Position numbers and translations under genes: made by a program. Positions 402 through 61,422 of a stretch of 64,000 nt of DNA are shown piece by piece. Numbering within the stretch: the stretch's first letter is position 1; each line of letters begins with the position of its first letter. This stretch comes from Ylistrum balloti (taxonomy: Eukaryota). The notes below the pieces were generated by a model. That model worked only from the letters and a program-made list of their open reading frames with translations. It had not been told where the DNA came from and searched no databases. The stretch lies in NCBI RefSeq assembly GCF_031769215.1, contig NW_026782376.1, forward strand, positions 682,001-746,000, read 5' to 3'.

Positions 402-593
402 CGGTGGTGGGGCACTACCCCGTGTGTCCCCGGGGGTGTACCAGTTGCTCACGGTTTAACGGGTGTGTCACCTGTCGACCACGCCTGTTTTTGTTCCTGG
501 AGAGAAGAGGTATGAGACAAAGAGGCGTGTGTACCCACAGTTGTCCACCAGATTATTACGGGGTCCGACGTCAGGAGTACAGCGTCTGCTATC
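402..593 (+). CDS. RSPO: RSPO exon: furin-like repeat 1 (ZNRF3/RNF43-binding module)
   Basis: tttttccag acceptor, gtaagt donor at 594, 8 Cys, LERRGMRQ motif. Confidence 0.95.
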
Positions 594-3500
594 GTAAGTA
601 ACCAGTGAGAATAAAGACACTGAAGATGTTTACATCAATTATACTTGAAATAGGGCTGCAACCATTATATATACAGTAAATATCATAATAAACACCCACT
701 GATCATGGGATGGGGGAGATTGTGATATGATCCTGTGCTCTGTTGTGTCAATACTCTCTTCTACGGGGAGAAAGTCACAAAAAAAATATTTAAAATAGAC
801 GCGGCAGAATTTTAACATAAAAAACAGACAAGAGAAATATGAATGTTATGTCGATGTAATTGTCTTAATCTGCGCTGGAAGTCAAACGTCAGGCTAAACC
901 ATAAATGTAAATAGAAAATTGCACAATAAATCCATTTTCCTAGGTTAATTCAAACTCAAAGTGCTGTCCAAGGATAAATTTTCCAAACCTAAATGTCGAC
1001 ATATTACTTATGTCTCTTTACTAAAATCAATACACTCGTATTTTTACATTATCTACTTGTGACTGCTAAAAAATACATCAGTTTTCTGTGTATTTCCTTC
1101 CGAAATCCACAAATCTACAGATCACACGTACAATGCACAACAATGTGAATACAAACGAATTAGATTTTAGCTCTCTTAACATATTAGAAAATAATACATC
1201 GTGTATGTTGATAAGTACAACGTACTAACACATTATCTATTAATAACCAATCGATGGAGCTAACTCAGAGAGAACTATGGAATTCTTTGGGGCTTTTTTT
1301 TATTTCCTCTGAAATGGAAAACAAAATACTGTATGATAGAATTAATTCAAAATATGTCTTTGAAAATCTTGATGATTCTTCTTTCTTTCTTTTCTTTCTT
1401 TAATCGGGCGATGGGAGAGATGCCTCGTCATGAGTAGTTATTGCCCTTTGATCACGATTAATGACACGTGTCGCAAGTAATGGCGCGTGTCGGAAATAAA
1501 CACGCGGACACGTGTAGCGTCCAGCCTTGAGTGATTTAGCCGACTGGTATCTATAAACAGTTTAGTCTAAAACAAAGCGCAAACACCCTTATTCAAAATT
1601 GCTAGAACATGGAATTATGGTATACAAAATAAGAGAATTTTATCGGAAACTGGAAGTTAAAGATCAAACCGCTATAGTATTTAGAAAAAAAAATCGACAG
1701 AAAGTTTTTATTCTTGATGTGGTCACTATGGTAAATTAAACTTTAACATAAGGAAATACATTTGGTGATTACAAATTATAAACGTTCCCTTACGTACACA
1801 TTTGATTTTACGTCGATGTCTTAGAACGAACCTAGCTGTATATCTTTCCAATCGGTAATTTTTCATTTTTCATTAATACTAAGACAACGATGTGTAATTG
1901 ATTTTAAAAGGGAAAAATGAAAAATATTATATATATCTATATATATATAAACGAAAAAAAATACATATATATATATATATGGGTTTGTTTTGCTGTTTAT
2001 TTGGTTTTTTGCTGTTTTTTGTTTTGTTTTTGTTTTTTGTATTTTTTTGTTTTTTTATCAAGCAAAAGCCTGATGGATTAATTACATATAATAGCGTATC
2101 ATTCATAAACTGTCATACTATTCCATAGCTATCAACAAGTGATCGTTTCGGATTTTATCAACAATAAGTCAATTATATTTTGTTCGTAGTAATAGAGGTG
2201 AAATTGACTATATTTTTACGACCGTCGTATATTTTCCGGAATATGATAGCAATCGTGTGCCTTCCGGTTTCAATTTTATACTAACGCCTGTAAACTGTCT
2301 AGTCGTGATATACTCATTACGGAGTGAAGTCACTTTACGAGGATGAATACACTTCATTTGAAATTCCCACACTGATTTAGCACCAGATATTCGATTTAAC
2401 AAGATAGTCTTGTTATCGTCAGCGATATCTTAAATGCGAAGGAATAAAGAGGCGCTCGTATAATGATTTAATCTCTATGTTACGTTGAGAGTGCGAGTGA
2501 TTCAGAATTGTCCAATAATCTCTGACAAAATATCAACAGAAAACCAATTCACAGGCCATATGTAAAACGCTTCCCGATTACCGAAGACATAACACTATCA
2601 TATCATTTGTTTATGTTAACGGCTATCTTAAAACACACGCCATCTTTTTACTCTACTCTCTCAATGTTCACTAATACTGACTCACTCACATCGTAATTTT
2701 AAAAAGAATTTTCGACTAAACATATAAAGTCCTTATTAATAGAATTAAAAGAAAACGCCTACAAACATTGTACATTACTCTTCTAACTGCATTTTAAATG
2801 TATCAGAATTGAAATTCAGTTTCTATAGAAAATATTATTAATCTATTTTTCTGCTACCTTATCCCACCTTTACTCATATATTACGTCTATAACAATACTG
2901 TAGGTCGTTTATGAACGTTTTCAATATCTCGTTTTAGTCGATGACGTTAAATTACTGAAACTTTAAAATGTCTCTATCTAAGCTGTTTTCTAGTATGTAA
3001 ACTAAGATTAGTGTAGTATCTGTGTGCTTGAATGAAGGATTCAAGTTGGCTCCAGAAGTGAGTATATCGCAGCTTGCGAAACCTGGTTTTACTTTTCGGA
3101 TAATTTTCAAAAGATATCACTTAAGTCTCCATTTTTGCAGTGTAATACAAGCAAGCAGTAGAGTATTTCACAAAGGCTCATTGTAACTTAATGATGAAAC
3201 TCACAAAATTTAGTAAATATTGTATCCTTTCTGTTTTTGGATAAGAAGAAAAAATAAATATTAAACAGCTAAAATCCTTATTGCATTATCAAACAACAAT
3301 CAAAGTCTAGGAATCTCTCCTTGCAGGATGCTCTAAGATGGCTATTTAAATTGAACATTGAATCCTCCATATATTGTAAATATTTGAGTTTTATCAATGA
3401 CGACAACATATTAAATAGTGTATTACTCACAGGTGATATAATGTCTCTGAGAAATGTCGGCCACGGGCCCTGATCTAAGAGTATCATCATTCTGTAAAAT

Positions 3501-6500
3501 GGTCTGATCTATCGTAACTGTGCACTTGTGTGACCGAGAATACCGGACAAAATAGAGAAGCTTTTCCATTTATCACTGATATTTGCCTATCACTTCAAAA
3601 GTGTCTTCATCATGAAGTTCACAATAGAAGAAAAAACTCGAACGCGCCGCGCGGATGAATACATCCCTGCCCCAGCTCCTCCTTGCTCACAAAGGACGAC
3701 TCGAACACAATATATTCCCCATGTATGACAATCTGAACTATGACTTCTTCGGCTTTGAGTATGAACCTGCCACCCACAACGACCTTAGTGTACCGTTCAC
3801 GGCAGAAGTAATTAATAAATATCAAAGAATCTGTCTGAATTCGTCATACAAAATCCCATAATAGACACCATTTTACTTTTAAATATTTTTTTTGTGATTT
3901 TGTTTAGTCAGTGTAGGGTTAAAAACGAAGTGCAGTTTTATATGCATGAATGTATTAATGCATTTTGTGTGTGAAAATCATTGGGATATTATAATTCATT
4001 GAATCGGTGAAGAAAATTCCCAACAAAGGAACACGAATGTTAAAGATGGCGTCTACTTCTAATTTATGACTGTTACTTTTTAAAATAATTAAAATAATTA
4101 AAAAAAAAAATAGAAAACAGATAAGTGAAAAAAAAGTGTTTTGTGAAAAGCTATATTATTTTTCTCTTAATTGTCATTTTAATTTAAAGCAGAGACTGAC
4201 AATAAAATTAGATTGCTATAGGAGAGATAAGACTTATAGTTGTGAGGGAATACATGTAGGTGGAAGCTGAGATTAGTTCGTTTTATAAAGTTTCACGCTG
4301 AGATAGATGAAAGAAAAACCAGCATCTAGTAAGACCTTCTAATCTAATCGGCTAACAACGTCATCGTCATTCTTAAATTAGGACCTAAAACAAGAGAAAT
4401 ATGAATTAATGTTTTCTAAATCATTTTTTTTTCTTTTTGCAAATATACCTCTTCCAAGACTGATGACGTTGAGAAACGTACTTACGTGGGGATATGCAAA
4501 TATGTTAGTGAGATCTGTTAAACACATAATACTTAAATACAAACATAAATAGATAAATGAATAAATAAATAAAGGGAAGTTGCTTCCTCCAGTTTTAACG
4601 AACAGCTCTTGGCCGTCCTTACATCACTACGCTGCAGATAGGGCGTAAGAATGGTGCTTGCTGCCCTTATTATATGATTGCATGAGGCGACTCACTTCAC
4701 TATCTTGCAATCCATATACTCTTTCACTCATACAACGCTTTTATTACAAATGGATGTCTTGACGACGCTGCCACACGCTTGGACTTGGAGTTGAGTGTTC
4801 ACAAAATGATTTTTTAAAGACTAGTTTCATAAACTTAGACAGGAAACAAAAAACGTTTAAGACTAGTTTCATAAACTCAGACAGGAAGCAAAAACTATAA
4901 TTGAAAGATCTTATGAGAAAAAAAGAGGAAATATTTTCTTTGGTTTTGTCCCATATGTCCTTAAGAGTATATTTTCACATGTTTTTTCCTTTGAAAAATG
5001 ATGTTACGGAGACGTGTTTTTCTGATGCACACGAAAAAAAATAACAAGATCGGGAGATCAGTCATGTTCATTTGTTAACAAGAAACACTGACTTAATATG
5101 TTAATATGCCGGTGTCCATGAATTTCAGACCCTGCAGATATGCGTTCCTATATAACATTTTAATGTTTTGGTATTGATAGTGTTTGATCTTCTCTAACAG
5201 ATTGTCAGATTCCGAATTGTGAGACGTGCTTCAACCAGAACTACTGTACCCAATGTCGGCCTCCATATATATCCTACAGGGGGCGCTGTATCGAACGATG
5301 TCCAGACGGACTACATTATGCAAATTATTCCAAAGACTGTCGCATGATAGGTAAAGTATATCGGTTTGCCATCAACATATTAACAGTTGAAAGAAAACCA
5401 TCAGTATTGGCAGCGAATCCATCGCATTAGGTGTTTTTTGGTCTATTAACACCCAAACTGTCTTGCTACATTTCCACCTTTTTTCGCTACTCATAGATTA
5501 GTCTCGGTTTCATGGTAATTTAGAATTGTAGAGAAAAAAAAGAAGAAAGTCACTTCCTCGACTAATGGGTACTTCAGTTTCTAGATCTATGCTATGTGCG
5601 TTGCCATAATTCAATAATTTCATTTTCTGTTGCGACAACTTGTTTTACAATTGTAGAAGAGTAAGGGTTGAAAGATTTCTTATGATGCGATAATTTTGCC
5701 TTTGTTTGGGCATGCTTACAGTCGACTGTATGGTGGGACCATGGGACCCGTGGGGACCGTGCACGCGGAATGGTCAAACGTGTGGATACACATACGGAAT
5801 AGCCACACGGACACGACAGATTCTGGAGCATCCGTCTCCAAACGGAATAAGTTGTCCGGCTCTGGCAGAGAATACTTGCTGTCGCATGACGATGCGACAT
5901 TGCGCAGGTGAGGAGAGGTTTCAAGCAATTGGGATCGGGTTTTTTAAAGCTACTGTCTCTAAAAAAATAATTATGCATCTGGATTTCAGCAAAATAGGTT
6001 CTTATTTGGTTCCGTGCATTGTCATTATCTTGCTATATATATGCATGCGCTGCCGAACGATTGGGGAATTAAGTTAATCTCCGCCAAAACATTCCATCTG
6101 TTATAAGTTTGAAACTTCTCCCTGTCCGTCTAAATTAAACTGTATAGATTCTTGTCAAATGAATAGTATGTTAAACCAAATGTATACAACTATATGAGCG
6201 AACAATTGTAAGTCGAGAGACTTTTCTATTTCTGAGATGCGAATATAAAACAATAGAATCAGCCGTAGTTTCAGGGTCAAATGTTACTGAATTTACGTCA
6301 ACTTTCAACCTATATGTGGCATTCCGTGCGTGGGGAATAAAATCTCATATGGTTATTTAAGTTAACGAATTTATGCAATCGTAGTGATGTACACGAATGC
6401 CTCTTACACGTGTTCTATGGATTACAAGGTGATTTTTTAAAATATAATTATTGAATATATTCAATAACTTGAACATGACAAGGGAGACAACACGAAAACA

Positions 6501-9500
6501 CAACACGGAATGAAATGATTAGTAAGGTAGCATAATGGGAACGAAATACAGGACAACGTATTCAATCAAAAATATTTTTAAATTTTGCCATTGGAGATTA
6601 AAGACACATAAAAAATACCAAACGATTCGGCAGCAAGTGATTACTAACGTAATCAAAATTTACTTATATATTTATATTTTATTTATATAGAAGCCCTTCC
6701 TATTAAGCTTAATCGTTAAAATTCAATAATGAACCGAAAGTATTGACCGAATATTTCTATTACTGATATAAAATACAAAATTTTGTCATTAATTTTTTAA
6801 GACGTACATAATTAAGCAGGTATACACCCAATCACTTTTATGCTTTTTACTATGCTTTGCATGCAGTTAATACTAAACTTTTATATGTATAGTTTTGAAT
6901 GCATGAGTTAACCTTGTCAAATATGATGTATGTAGAATCCCGCCACGTGGTGGTATATCGAATCAGTTCGTCGACGCAGCAACGTAACCGAATTAAAGCA
7001 TGCATATGACTACCTATAAATGGAAAGAAATTAACCTGTTGTGAAAGGTTAGCGGAATGTGTTGTTTTCTTGGTACTCATAAACAACTTGAGTAAATACA
7101 AATTCGTGTATATGAACATTTATTAAAGAATTTATGATAAAGCATGTTTTCCGTTGCAATATAAAATGGAAGTTTTCTCCAATCCAATAACTCATCGACA
7201 ATTTACACTACAATACTGCAGTCTTCTCCGGCTTTTCAGACGTCGATGTTCCTCGGGTCTGAGGAACGGATTTTTTATAATGAAAATCTCCAGAAATTAG
7301 CCTCTATTTCAATAAACACATGGCACGAGGGATTGATTAAGATATGTATAAAACTTTACAAAAGATTATAAGAACAGTTCTTGGAAATGACATTAAAAGA
7401 TGGTGAGGAACAGATATAGAAACTACACCAGGAGTTGATGAGATAATCGATTGATTAAGGTTTGCTTCCTTTTATTGTGGCTGCACTGTGCACACATTGA
7501 GACGAGGGAGGGATTACTTTAACTGTATATAACTGCATTTGATTGAGCGGACATATATTGCTTTCCAATTATAGTGTTGTCTCCAGACGATTCGCTCTAG
7601 TAGAGTATCACTGAGAGGCAATCGTTTCCAATAAGGTCGACATGTAAAATGATGAATGCTATTTAGATCGTTTGTACAGAACATTATAATTAAAATAACA
7701 CTAAAATCACAATAAGACATTATAGTCATTGCACGAAACGGTCTAAATATATAATAAATAAACACAATATCATATACGCATTTCTAAAACAGTATTACAA
7801 TGTATTTATTATTAAGAAGCGTTGTTGATCTTCATTACTGTAATTATATGATGTAAAAGGAAGCCGGATGAAAATGAAGAAAAATGATTAGATTTAATAT
7901 CTTGTCACCTACTCCACACGCAGGGTAAAGAGAATCACGAGATTGGTTGCCTTTAAAGGTTATGAAACATTTGATAAAATGTTTTCATCCATTAACTTGT
8001 ATATAATACGTACATTGTATATATGTTACAGTTCACTGCTATTAACAGTAACGTTTACATTTACTGACCATATCTAAAATTGCAAATTGTAAAAGTTGTT
8101 TGGATTGACGATGAAATTTTTGCTGGTTTTTACCAAATACTTGAAGTTATATAGGTTATGTTTTCACAGACGTCATGATTTTTTTTTCAATTAATGGTAA
8201 TTTTTTTATCGCGATATTACTTCGCTTGAAAATCTTTTCAGTATTCACGATATCTAACACACACGTTCAGTTTGAAGTCGGGAATGGTTTATGGGGGATA
8301 TTTTGGAGTGCGGGAAATTTTGGGTCAATTCCCAAATGTAGTTGACAACATTATTTATCACTGTAAATATCACCACGGAAAATAGATATGAAAATAACAA
8401 GAACGACATCCACTGCATTGCGAAGTACTGACTGGTCACGTGGTCAGCATTTGTGTTTACGTAGCCTTTGTTGAATAGTTTTGTAATAAGTACGAATGAA
8501 ACTTTTGTAAACAAGTTGGTTTAATGGGTTCATTATTCAGTGTAACTAATCACGTCTTTGGTTCAAGCGGTTTTCTTTTCATTTCTATTTCATTTTTTAG
8601 CAAATACGTACCAGACAACATGCACTTTTTAATAGGCTTCAAAATGTTTATACAGCTATTTACTGTGAAGAATTGGAAAACGCACCTTATACTTGTAAAG
8701 GACTCAGATTTGATGAATTTCCAAGTCAAAAACTTTCACTGAATAAATGTTCTTTTATGTAAACATGGAAATAAAATCTTGGTACTTTAAGGTATTTTGC
8801 TTTTCAAAAAGTTCAATCTAAAATAAGCAAAAAAGATGTAATTTGTGTTTTACATATCCGTTAGAATTTATGTGTATGTTCTCAAATTGAAATGTATTAT
8901 TTCAAAGTTTTAGAACATAACGCAATTTCAAAATATTTGAAAATAACCGTGTAGAAAGTGTGAATTCTCTAAATTATAACGGAACAAATACATTATTTCG
9001 TATATATAAACGCGTGTTATCTACGGTAAGATAAATCACTTGGTAACCTCGTGTGTGTAATTACTCGGTTTGACCGTTACAGACCACACACGGCCATGTT
9101 GACCTTACACTTCTCCGAATTAAGCGGTTCCTATCACAATGTTTTCTTTGTATATACTTGTTGACAGAAATCCTCTGAACTAGTCAGCAGCACATTTTCG
9201 TCCACAACGTAATTTTCACTTGATGTTTACATAACTTGCCTCGGAGTGGTTTCAAAGCGTTTTCGTCAAGCAACTTTAAGGCGAATGATATTTTTCACAA
9301 TAAGTTACAAAATTGTAAAATGCATAGTGCCAATTATATTTTGGAATCATGGATACCATAATCCTATTGTATATCATACTGTATTAAATTTGTTATGACT
9401 AGAACTTTGAAACCGTTTCCATGTTACTTTTGGTTTTATAAGAATTTTGCATGAATCCCGATATATTTTTATAATGCATGTGATTTCTGTTAATTAACAT

Positions 9501-9974
9501 CCGGTCGATCTTTAATACAAGTATGAGTATAAACCGGAAGTGGAAATACAAGAGTGGAGCATGGTCCGGATGTGCCTCACTGACGTGTTCATTATCATCC
9601 TTTTTTATATATAATTCTAATGTATATTCAATCCTGGCTAACAATGACCCAATCTTGGGGAGGTTAATCAAACTATAGCCTGATGAGGCATCTAATGTAT
9701 ACTTCCAGATCTGTTACTCAATAACTCAGATCTTACGCTTGAGAAAAGGAAAAAGCCATTTGGAAAACGAAAGAGACGACGGAGACGAAAAAAGAAACGA
9801 AAGTACAGAAAAAGAAAAAGGGGAAAGAAACGAAGACGCGGAAGAAAGAACAAACATCGAAATAGAAAGAGATTACAAAGAAAACGAAAACAAAGATTAC
9901 AAAAAAAGGCATGGGAAGTGTTTTGTGGCCGCGACCGAGTGTATAATGATATTCATATTCTTTCTAATGGATAA
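402..9974 (+). CDS. RSPO: R-spondin family protein; 5' signal-peptide exon lies outside the window. Coding exons 402-593, 5201-5350, 5722-5907, 9709-9974
   Basis: Four exons with GT-AG boundaries, all joined in phase 1, give one open frame: FU1 (CPRGCTSCSRFNGCVTC...LERRGMRQRGVC), FU2 (CQIPNCETCFNQNYCTQC), TSP1 (VDCMVGPWDPWGPC...CRMTMRHC) and a K/R-rich tail ending at TAA 9972-9974. Domain order and one-domain-per-exon layout match vertebrate RSPO1-4 (established knowledge). Confidence 0.95.
1400..1560. promoter_or_regulatory. Candidate intronic enhancer in RSPO
   Basis: CCTTTGATC (TCF/LEF) at 1445-1453, CACGTG at 1465 and 1509, ATTAAT/TAATGG homeodomain cores, CpG-rich. Confidence 0.35.
4605..4700 (+). 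mobile_element. Probable SINE 3' remnant
   Basis: GC-rich island ggccgtcc...gcatgaggcgact resembling invertebrate SINE tails; recalled similarity only. Confidence 0.3.
5201..5350 (+). CDS. RSPO: RSPO exon: furin-like repeat 2 (LGR-binding module)
   Basis: ctctaacag acceptor, gtaaag donor; HCQIPNCETCFNQNYCTQCRPPYISYRGRCIERCPDGLHYANYSKDCRMI. Not present in the ORF track. Confidence 0.93.
5722..5907 (+). CDS. RSPO: RSPO exon: thrombospondin type 1 repeat
   Basis: cttacag acceptor, gtgagg donor; WDPW motif, TRTRQ, C-terminal CRMTMRHC. Confidence 0.95.
9709..9974 (+). CDS. RSPO: RSPO terminal exon: polybasic tail
   Basis: acttccag acceptor; phase-1 join gives DLLLNNSDLTLEKRKKPFGKRKRRRRRKKKRKYRKRKRGKKRRRGRKNKHRNRKRLQRKRKQRLQKKAWEVFCGRDRVYNDIHILSNG*. 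The ORF track shows a different, acidic frame here. Confidence 0.88.

Positions 9975-40792: not shown

Positions 40793-61422
<20,630 letters not shown>

Follow-up and report, generated by a model that had tools for sequence, protein, structure and literature searches.

The window analysed here, a 64,000-nucleotide stretch of DNA from the saucer scallop Ylistrum balloti (Pectinidae), raises the question of whether a mollusc carries a true R-spondin and, if so, through which partners such a protein would act on Wnt signalling. In an earlier review, the R-spondin/Lgr5/Rnf43 module was regarded as a vertebrate-only add-on, with the first R-spondin appearing in deuterostomes (de Lau et al. 2014; PMC3937510). 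A survey of 430 genomes has since reported RSPO genes in molluscs, annelids and brachiopods, inferred a bilaterian origin for the family and found the same residues conserved (Cheng et al. 2025; PMC12111769). The initial annotation of the window described a complete-architecture R-spondin from a probable protostome and proposed that, if the host were a mollusc, the RSPO-ZNRF3-LGR module would be bilaterian-ancestral.

The R-spondin gene of Y. balloti comprises five coding exons, each encoding one protein module, and four of these lie on the + strand within the window:

C519:649600-649687 (same contig, contig numbering), outside the window: coding exon 1, signal peptide, found via the Argopecten orthologue
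402..593, + strand: coding exon 2 of 5, FU1 (the ZNRF3/RNF43-binding domain), matching PF15913, R-spondin-2 in the PDB and Argopecten
594..5200, + strand: phase-1 intron of 4.6 kb between FU1 and FU2, donor GTAAGT at 594-599, acceptor AG at 5199-5200
5201..5350, + strand: coding exon 3, FU2 (the LGR-binding domain in vertebrates), matching PF15913, RSPO1/2 in the PDB and Argopecten
5722..5907, + strand: coding exon 4, TSP1 repeat, matching TSP1_spondin, R-spondin-2 (8xft) in the PDB and Argopecten
9709..9974, + strand: coding exon 5, basic tail, stop TAA at 9972-9974, matching Argopecten

The FU1 exon (402-593) is bounded by an acceptor AG at 400-401 and the GTAAGT donor at 594-599. All introns of the gene are of phase 1, such that FU1 is flanked by phase-1 introns on both sides, and the codon that spans the FU1/FU2 junction (C+AT) encodes His, matching the Argopecten irradians orthologue. 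Together the exons sum to 882 nt, or 293 codons and a stop; none of the five is interrupted, and each of the ten splice sites is canonical and in matching phase. Exon by exon, the gene is 87-92% identical to the 297-residue R-spondin-2-like protein of A. irradians (92% for FU1, 87% for FU2 and 88% for TSP1), a comparison that confirms every junction. An alternative in-frame acceptor is present in the tail exon at 9729/9730; the acceptor at 9709 is supported because the tail exon is 87% identical to residues 205-297 of the Argopecten orthologue. No RNA run containing the Y. balloti locus was found, as the sequencing-run search gave DNA runs only, and the splice junctions thus rest on homology.

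The signal-peptide exon opens with ATG, encodes the hydrophobic core ILWILVTFHLMV and closes with RLKR, where the GTAAGT donor is in phase 1; residues 1-30 of the Argopecten orthologue match it at 87% identity. It was located solely by a whole-genome search with that orthologue; a hydrophobicity scan, a donor scan and tblastn placed no such exon in the 30 kb directly upstream, and the FU1 exon lies 32.7 kb downstream of it across the first intron. Judged by eye, the N-terminus is predicted to be a signal peptide and the protein to be secreted. The arrangement first described for this locus, FU1, FU2, TSP1 and a basic tail on four phase-1 exons, is confirmed to the base (402-593, 5201-5350, 5722-5907 and 9709-9974). 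Its description as a complete architecture needs correcting for the window itself, since the signal-peptide exon stands 32.7 kb upstream, outside the window.

The gene is almost certainly a true R-spondin. Searched one exon at a time, the protein matches R-spondin profiles at levels well beyond chance. Both furin-like repeats exceed the 28-bit cut-off of Pfam Furin-like_2 (PF15913), FU1 over positions 2-54 of the profile (E 2e-19) and FU2 over positions 57-102 (E 5e-11), and the TSP1 exon matches TSP1_spondin (PF19028; E 1e-10) with 41.9 bits against a cut-off of 41 bits. In the PDB, FU1 is matched by R-spondin-2 (E 8e-18) and FU2 by RSPO1/2 (E about 1e-10), with R-spondins the only matches to either below E 1e-6; for TSP1, human R-spondin-2 (8xft; E 7e-19) is followed by thrombospondin-1 at E 0.076. 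The FU1 and FU2 exons encode eight Cys each, and all 16 furin-repeat Cys are kept. FU2 contains a CFNQNYC loop together with an NYS sequon at the position of the N-G-T in human RSPO1, and TSP1 contains WDPW as its WxxW motif along with seven Cys, the extra one forming a CC pair. The tail exon, with 43 K/R in 87 residues, runs from an N-N-S sequon through a 56-residue basic core (41 K/R) to the C-terminal motif AW..FC....VYND and the stop. In the library searches, every named protein was an R-spondin. With the Furin-like_2 profile, this locus is the sole match in the Y. balloti genome, and the R-spondin is a single-copy gene. A generic furin-repeat or TSP1 protein was ruled out, as the strong PDB matches are R-spondins and there is no other Furin-like_2 locus.

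The residues that contact the receptors in RSPO1, whose roles have been reviewed (PMC3937510), are largely retained. Within FU1, the stretch LERRGMRQ keeps the equivalents of R66, R70 and Q71 with I69 replaced by Met, and the four ZNRF3/RNF43-contact residues S48, N51, R66 and Q71 are all identical. The LGR-contact positions show F106 and R87 unchanged, Arg for K59 and Tyr for F110. Among 27 RSPOs from eight phyla, the R66-equivalent Arg is invariant and the Q71-equivalent Gln is at least 90% conserved. Position 110 is Tyr in most lophotrochozoan RSPOs, a state shared by the scallop, and position 106 varies among them, with His or Tyr in a nemertean and a chiton. The motifs singled out by the initial annotation are borne out: LERRGMRQ, read as the Arg, Met and Gln of the ZNRF3/RNF43 finger, shows R66 and Q71 kept and I69 changed to Met in the PDB alignment, CFNQNYC with F106 kept and F110 as Tyr is present in FU2 with its NYS sequon, and WDPW is present in TSP1 at 5722-5907.

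Compared with vertebrate RSPO1-4, represented by structures such as 4C8V, 4KNG and 8XFT, the scallop gene has the same module order, one-module-per-exon layout and phase-1 introns, and it keeps the furin-repeat cysteines, S48, N51, R66, Q71, R87, F106, the WxxW motif and the RSPO1-aligned sequon. Unlike the vertebrate genes, it is a single gene with Tyr in place of F110, Arg in place of K59, an extra TSP1 Cys and a Cys-bearing C-terminal motif. The lophotrochozoan R-spondins are of the same family and architecture, and share with the scallop the Tyr at 110 and an N-x-S sequon after TSP1; identity is 87-92% to Argopecten and 41-66% per exon to Sinanodonta. They show no difference of substance from the scallop gene, which is the Y. 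balloti member of this group. NCBI already names R-spondins in many lophotrochozoans, as had been anticipated of automated annotations, including Argopecten irradians R-spondin-2-like, Crassostrea virginica R-spondin-3-like, Octopus bimaculoides R-spondin-2 and Lingula anatina R-spondin-2. Among the NCBI proteins listed for the Sinanodonta query, Argopecten was present and a Y. balloti R-spondin was not.

The relationship of these genes to the four vertebrate paralogues was addressed in a small tree of RSPOs only, without an outgroup of other furin-repeat proteins, in which the Argopecten orthologue stood in for the Y. balloti gene. Here, a split with 96/95 support separates 28 lophotrochozoan from 17 deuterostome rows. 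The pectinid gene nests among bivalves in a lophotrochozoan clade sister to the deuterostome RSPOs, in keeping with the expected R-spondin grouping, and genes of the scallop type fall outside the vertebrate RSPO1-4 clade (86/94 support). This branching, beyond the 96/95 split, makes the scallop gene a pro-orthologue of all four vertebrate genes, and neither an RSPO2, as in the NCBI-style name, nor an RSPO4, the label of Cheng et al. That study places protostome genes in the RSPO4 subfamily (Cheng et al. 2025; PMC12111769), a placement unsupported by the small tree here.

A ZNRF3/RNF43-type PA-RING ligase, the partner that the initial annotation proposed to seek in the genome, was found on contig C344. 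The locus consists of three collinear ZNRF_3_ecto exons, one exon each for the TM segment and the RING-H2 domain, and a tail exon of 585 codons; as a set they match an NCBI ZNRF3-like protein of Y. balloti whose 898 aa comprise a PA-type ectodomain, TM segment, RING-H2 domain and long tail. The protein is far closer to human ZNRF3 (E 5e-59) than to RNF43 (E 2e-18), and it keeps intact the four R-spondin-facing residues Q100, H102, K125 and E127 (human numbering). Its fast-evolving tail exon matches the Y. balloti protein of NCBI at 100% identity, compared with 80% for Mizuhopecten, 73% for Argopecten and 81% for Pecten, and the suspected protostome host is accordingly the mollusc named above. 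This ligase is the presumed receptor of the scallop R-spondin; in protostomes, the homologue that has been described is PLR-1 of C. elegans, a species to which the conserved control of Frizzled by these ligases extends (PMC3937510). By sequence comparison, both faces of the FU1-ZNRF3 interface are conserved in the scallop.

The complex, also proposed for modelling, was co-folded from FU1 and the scallop ZNRF3 ectodomain and scored 0.75, the best of three controls scoring 0.00. Agreement between the runs is at least 83% of contacts, and the partner pLDDT is 76 or higher. In benchmarks, 51 of 78 solved complexes reach the mark used for such scores, as do 2 of 108 mismatched pairs; among eukaryotes, the figures are 39 of 65 for solved pairs lacking a similar earlier complex and 2 of 126 for unrelated pairs. 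The model puts the equivalents of RSPO1 S48, N51, R66 and Q71 at the interface, and the contacts with the lowest error join His48 and Gln46 in the ectodomain piece (human H102 and Q100) to Gln37 and Met35 of FU1 (RSPO1 Q71 and I69). Because RSPO-ZNRF3 complexes have already been solved, the score may reflect memory, and the model indicates likeness to the known complexes, not binding. Taken with the interface residues, we consider it probable that the scallop R-spondin engages the scallop ZNRF3.

The explanation that best accounts for the locus as a whole, and which we regard as likely, is that of a single secreted Y. balloti R-spondin, a lophotrochozoan pro-orthologue of RSPO1-4, that is predicted to potentiate Wnt signalling via ZNRF3. 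The secreted protein would bind the protease-associated ectodomain of the ZNRF3 orthologue through the FU1 hairpin, and this binding would clear the ligase from the cell membrane, sparing Frizzled and thereby potentiating the Wnt signal. A second anchor could be provided by FU2 via an LGR, by TSP1 and the basic tail via heparan-sulfate proteoglycans, or by both. In the literature searched, no measured ZNRF3 binding, LGR binding or Wnt potentiation was found for any protostome R-spondin.

As for the LGR partner, type-A LGRs occur on contigs C196 and C716, with TSHR/FSHR as best PDB matches, and type-C LGRs occur on C488 and as many single-exon LRR-7TM genes, most with LDLa and with RXFP1 as best 7TM match. 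The LRR-7TM genes on C397 and C499 lack LDLa and their 7TMs are RXFP1-like too; for the C499 gene, the scores are 195 bits (LGR4) and 201 bits (RXFP1). The Pfam 7tm_1 genome scan scored the best 147 of 760 candidates, and querying the genome with a type-A 7TM gave 32 LGR-type loci, followed by a gap down to ordinary GPCRs. Among the 20 LGR-type loci (22 places) that were read, found with a type-A 7TM query and not with LGR4/5/6 or rickets, no type-B LGR was seen, all being type A or type C/RXFP1-like by motifs or PDB match. Of the three-part module first proposed as bilaterian-ancestral, two parts, RSPO and ZNRF3, are shown; for the LGR part, the queries used gave type-A and type-C receptors and no type-B orthologue. 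That the action of the scallop R-spondin depends on an LGR is plausible but somewhat doubtful.

These observations give some weight to a reading in which the protein is a true R-spondin that works without LGR, its FU1 acting on ZNRF3 and its TSP1 and basic tail on HSPGs; in that case, LGRs would have begun to capture R-spondin only in deuterostomes or vertebrates, with the protostome type-B LGR remaining a bursicon receptor. The searches brought up over 30 type-A and type-C LRR-7TM genes and no type-B LGR, F110 of the LGR "phenylalanine clamp" is Tyr, and positions 106 and 110 are variable in lophotrochozoans. The tail is extremely basic, with K/R at 41 of its 56 core residues, and LGR-independent, HSPG-dependent signalling is established for vertebrate RSPO2/3 in work cited by Cheng et al. 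(PMC12111769). Additionally, molluscs conserve bursicon, which in insects is the ligand of the type-B LGR (PMC3937510). Nonetheless, the charged LGR contacts persist (R87 unchanged, K59 as Arg), as does F106, and the F-to-Y change is conservative. That no type-B LGR was found is itself weak evidence, coming from a search without an LGR4/5/6 or rickets query in which only the best candidates were scored, and type-B LGRs have been reported from cnidarians and bilaterians, in a tree that labels mollusc sequences (PMC4079206). On balance, we consider this LGR-free action unlikely. Less likely still is its extension to the ancestor, whereby the first bilaterian R-spondin acted on ZNRF3 via proteoglycans and LGR4-6 were recruited only in deuterostomes; the bivalve tail may also loop back onto TSP1 through a lineage-specific disulfide that joins the extra Cys of the CC pair to that of AW..FC, generating a constrained heparan-sulfate-binding loop.

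The preferred reading, potentiation of Wnt via ZNRF3, must also be weighed against an R-spondin by descent whose main role in molluscs is not in Wnt signalling, for example antagonism of BMP receptors via TSP1 and ZNRF3, or gonad and sex differentiation. Vertebrate RSPO2/3 do antagonise BMP signalling through ZNRF3, according to studies cited in PMC12111769, and R-spondin is mentioned in bivalve gonad-transcriptome papers. The best-conserved surface, however, is exactly the ZNRF3-binding hairpin, the control of Frizzled by ZNRF3/PLR-1 extends to C. elegans (PMC3937510), and nothing points to another pathway, which leaves a principally non-Wnt role improbable. A decaying or silent pseudogene copy that merely looks intact could be entertained given the lack of an RNA run with the locus and an unusually long first intron (32.7 kb), but this very improbable reading was rejected on the open exons, the canonical splice sites and the 87-92% amino-acid identity to another pectinid genus; the 882-nt frame and all furin-repeat and TSP1 Cys are likewise kept, the locus is the only Furin-like_2 one in the genome, and a related RSPO of the bivalve type occurs as an 894-nt ORF without interruption on an assembled contig of 1347 nt, interpreted as a spliced transcript. 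A deuterostome host or contaminant contig, to which the high identity to vertebrate RSPO2 for a protostome gene (E 1e-17 to 1e-19 for FU1 and TSP1) might point, has a negligible chance of being correct and is refuted by the 100% identity of the ZNRF3 tail exon to the Y. balloti protein, the 87-92% identity of the RSPO exons to Argopecten and the placement of the pectinid gene among bivalves, with the contig itself spanning 2.39 Mb.

Mollusc R-spondins, their bilaterian origin and the conservation of their residues have been known since Cheng et al. 2025 (PMC12111769), and the scallop gene is in this respect a real but ordinary find. It nonetheless provides a clean counter-example to the deuterostome-first view of older reviews. 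For nomenclature, the lophotrochozoan genes are better treated as pro-orthologues of the four vertebrate paralogues than as RSPO2, RSPO3 or RSPO4.

The R-spondin of Ylistrum balloti is a real, intact and ordinary gene. The exons and motifs described for it at 402-9974 proved exact on three-frame translation and on reading the DNA around each boundary, and the features in the window are:

402-593, + strand, furin-like repeat 1 (FU1) exon; acceptor AG 400-401, donor GTAAGT 594-599
5201-5350, + strand, furin-like repeat 2 (FU2) exon; donor GTAAAG
5722-5907, + strand, thrombospondin type-1 repeat (TSP1) exon; donor GTGAGG
5872-5877, + strand, CC pair in the TSP1 exon
9709-9974, + strand, basic C-terminal (tail) exon; stop TAA 9972-9974
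9923-9925, + strand, Cys of the C-terminal AW..FC motif

The window is free of N. Introns are phase 1 throughout, and the codons split at the three internal window junctions encode His, Val and Asp. A second in-frame acceptor is possible in the tail exon at 9729/9730; the 9709 acceptor and every junction residue are confirmed by P0185, the 297-residue Argopecten irradians orthologue (named ‘R-spondin-2-like isoform X2’ by NCBI). The first whole codon of the FU1 exon (window 404-592) is GTG, encoding Val in the protein. The window start falls within the first coding intron. The architecture that the initial annotation called complete thus holds for FU1, FU2, TSP1 and tail, while the signal-peptide exon lies outside, upstream on the same contig, C519, of which the window is 682001-746000. 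Scanning the 30 kb immediately 5' of the window did not reveal it. A whole-genome search with P0185 matched all four window exons (87-92% identity) and gave a fifth match at C519:649600-649689, 87% identical to P0185 residues 1-30. This piece opens with ATG, encodes a hydrophobic core and closes with ...RLKR and a single further base, followed by a GTAAGT donor, so that this exon is phase 1 too; the codon split at its junction with FU1 encodes Thr, which Argopecten has as well. Together, the five exons make up 88+192+150+186+266 = 882 nt (293 codons and a stop), and the gene spans ~42.4 kb, 32.7 kb of which is the first intron.

Searches with the separate exons in both Pfam and the PDB establish the gene as an R-spondin. 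Furin-like_2 (PF15913) matches the FU1 exon at positions 2-54 (E 2e-19) and the FU2 exon at 57-102 (E 5e-11), and TSP1_spondin matches the third window exon (E 1e-10). Against all PDB chains, FU1 and FU2 retrieve R-spondin-1/2 only (best E 8e-18 and 1e-10, respectively; next family for FU1, E 0.3), and the TSP1 exon matches human R-spondin-2 at E 7e-19 as against 0.076 for thrombospondin-1. The tail matches no Pfam family and is rich in Lys and Arg (43 of 87 residues; 41 of 56 in its core). The gene is single-copy, because the Furin-like_2 profile finds no second locus across the 648.5-Mb assembly. The sole other clear gene noticed downstream in the window is FAM135-like, and includes a 569-codon Ser-rich open exon (50121-51830, minus strand). 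Human FAM135A and RSPO3 both lie on chromosome 6, and FAM135B and RSPO2 on chromosome 8; this neighbourhood might be an old linkage.

A protein-library search with FU1 returned 283 proteins at E ≤0.001, 200 of them at E ≤1e-10. As the initial annotation had cautioned, such proteins are already widely named, including those of gastropods (Aplysia, Physella, Babylonia, Bulinus, Lymnaea, Biomphalaria, Elysia, Haliotis, Lottia, Gigantopelta), bivalves (Argopecten, Crassostrea virginica as ‘R-spondin-3-like’, Sinanodonta, Solemya, Tegillarca), cephalopods (Octopus, Sepia), the chiton Liolophura, the brachiopod Lingula, the nemertean Tubulanus and the annelids Lamellibrachia and Ridgeia, along with deuterostomes (a starfish and vertebrate RSPO1-4). 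P0187, a bivalve-type RSPO, is encoded by an 894-nt ORF that runs without interruption on an assembled contig of 1347 nt, which we read as a spliced transcript. Maximum likelihood on 45 FU1-FU2-TSP1 cores (181 columns; no outgroup, midpoint root for drawing only, five long-branch rows) separates 28 lophotrochozoan from 17 deuterostome rows (support 96/95), nests the pectinid row, in which Argopecten P0185 represents the Y. balloti gene, among bivalves, and recovers a vertebrate RSPO1-4 clade (86/94) with the starfish outside. By these splits, the scallop gene is the pro-orthologue of all four vertebrate paralogues. Database names are inconsistent, with NCBI using R-spondin-2, -2-like or -3-like for lophotrochozoan orthologues (P0185, P0030, P0189, P0192); Cheng et al. 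2025 (PMC12111769) file them under RSPO4, whereas in the tree they fall outside all four vertebrate subfamilies.

The host was confirmed as a mollusc, and hence a protostome, by a fast-evolving 585-codon ZNRF3-like exon on contig C344, which is 100% identical to NCBI ‘E3 ubiquitin-protein ligase ZNRF3-like [Ylistrum balloti]’ and 80%, 73% and 81% identical to Mizuhopecten, Argopecten and Pecten, respectively; Y. balloti is a bivalve of the family Pectinidae (Mollusca, Lophotrochozoa, Protostomia). R-spondins had been assigned a deuterostome origin and the module considered vertebrate-only (de Lau et al. 2014; PMC3937510). A survey of 430 animals has since recorded RSPO from Mollusca, Annelida and Brachiopoda, with none in Arthropoda, Cnidaria, Porifera or Placozoa; it inferred that the gene arose in the bilaterian ancestor, and reported R66, Q71, F106 and F110 as near-universally conserved (Cheng et al. 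2025; PMC12111769). Neither mollusc R-spondins nor their bilaterian origin are therefore novel. The literature searched yielded no work on the function of any protostome R-spondin.

Receptor-contact residues, with roles as in de Lau et al. 2014 (PMC3937510), were numbered through HMMER alignments to human RSPO1, which bore out the Arg, Met and Gln of LERRGMRQ, the retained F106 and the F110-to-Tyr change. The scallop protein is identical at all four ZNRF3/RNF43 contacts S48, N51, R66 and Q71, retains R70, and has Met for I69, as in RSPO2. Two LGR contacts, F106 and R87, are retained, and K59 and F110 are replaced by Arg and Tyr, respectively. In 27 FU1 domains (molluscs, brachiopod, nemertean, annelid, starfish and vertebrates), the Arg at R66 never varies and the Gln at Q71 is at least 90% conserved. 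Tyr is the commonest lophotrochozoan state at position 110 and, on these alignments, is no scallop oddity; at position 106, a nemertean has His and a chiton Tyr. In the alignment, the NYS sequon falls opposite the N-G-T of RSPO1, and WDPW retains the WxxW C-mannosylation motif.

Other features are lineage-restricted. In all bivalve RSPOs with a complete C-terminus (Y. balloti, Argopecten, Sinanodonta, Solemya and three assembled transcripts), a seventh TSP1 Cys forms the CC pair, and exactly one Cys occurs in the C-terminal motif (A/T)W..(F/I)C....V(Y/F).D. Chiton, octopus, nemertean and annelid proteins have neither, and Lingula has one tail Cys without the CC. This bivalve-only distribution suggests a disulfide, intra- or inter-chain, that would join TSP1 to the end of the tail. 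The furin-type R-x-K/R-R site RLKR (G000:C519:649675-649686) lies between signal peptide and FU1, and its counterparts in the majority of the lophotrochozoan RSPOs examined (RVKR, REKR, RTKR, RGKR, RSKR) indicate that a short propeptide may be cleaved there. Directly 3' of TSP1, the N-x-S sequon of D-L-x-x-N-x-S (window 9718-9726) is common to bivalves, chiton, octopus, brachiopod, nemertean and annelids, and is absent from the starfish, vertebrate and non-sacoglossan gastropod rows examined.

The genome also encodes a ZNRF3/RNF43-like PA-RING ligase. ZNRF_3_ecto (PF18212) matches three collinear exons on C344; the exons downstream of these encode a TM segment, a RING-H2 domain (zf-RING_2, E 4e-9) and a long tail. 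The annotated 898-residue protein, P0001, aligns with human ZNRF3 at E 5e-59, as against 2e-18 for RNF43, and is identical to ZNRF3 at the R-spondin-facing Q100, H102, K125 and E127, which other bivalves also keep, with an occasional Lys-to-Arg change. Co-folding of FU1 (window 410-592) with P0001 ectodomain residues 22-178 scored 0.75, against 0.00 for the best of three controls, with at least 83% of contacts agreeing between runs and partner pLDDT at least 76. Of solved complexes, 51 of 78 pass the mark, compared with 2 of 108 mismatched pairs; for eukaryotes, the figures are 39 of 65 solved pairs without a like older complex and 2 of 126 unrelated pairs. If the residue numbers are read as counting within each co-folded piece, the lowest-error pairs join ectodomain His48 and Gln46 (human H102, Q100) to FU1 Gln37 and Met35 (RSPO1 Q71, I69), and Lys70 (K125) contacts Asn17 (N51). 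These predicted contacts are those of the known R-spondin-ZNRF3 interface; because like complexes are already solved, the pass speaks for likeness, and is not proof that the scallop copy binds.

No type-B LGR was found in the genome, a weak negative because no LGR4/5/6 or rickets sequence was available as query. A 7tm_1 genome scan that scored 147 of 760 candidates gave none. A long ORF on C196 is a type-A receptor with the hinge motifs YPHHCCAF and FNPCEDVMGY, which we take to be type-A hallmarks. With its 7TM domain as query, 32 LGR-type loci precede a gap before ordinary GPCRs. C716 is type A (best PDB matches TSHR/FSHR) and C488 type C (RXFP1); the remaining loci inspected are single-exon LRR-7TM genes, mostly with an LDLa module. 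The LDLa-less C397 and C499 nonetheless have RXFP1-like 7TM domains, C499 scoring 195 bits to LGR4 and 201 to RXFP1. These single-exon receptors, of relaxin-receptor/GRL101 type, form a large expansion of at least 25 loci (contigs C1046, C586, C568, C116, C15, C644, C693, C493, C8, C171, C560, C1032, C129, C630, C635 and others), several in tandem pairs; C397, C837, C44, C471 and C499 lack LDLa. Type-B LGRs are reported to be ancient, occurring in cnidarians and bilaterians (PMC4079206), and the tree of that paper labels mollusc sequences.

The proposal of an RSPO-ZNRF3-LGR module is accordingly right in gene identity, host and its ZNRF3 leg, with the LGR leg unproven. The most likely mechanism is that FU1 would sequester ZNRF3 and so potentiate Wnt signalling; either an LGR or a proteoglycan may serve as the second anchor.
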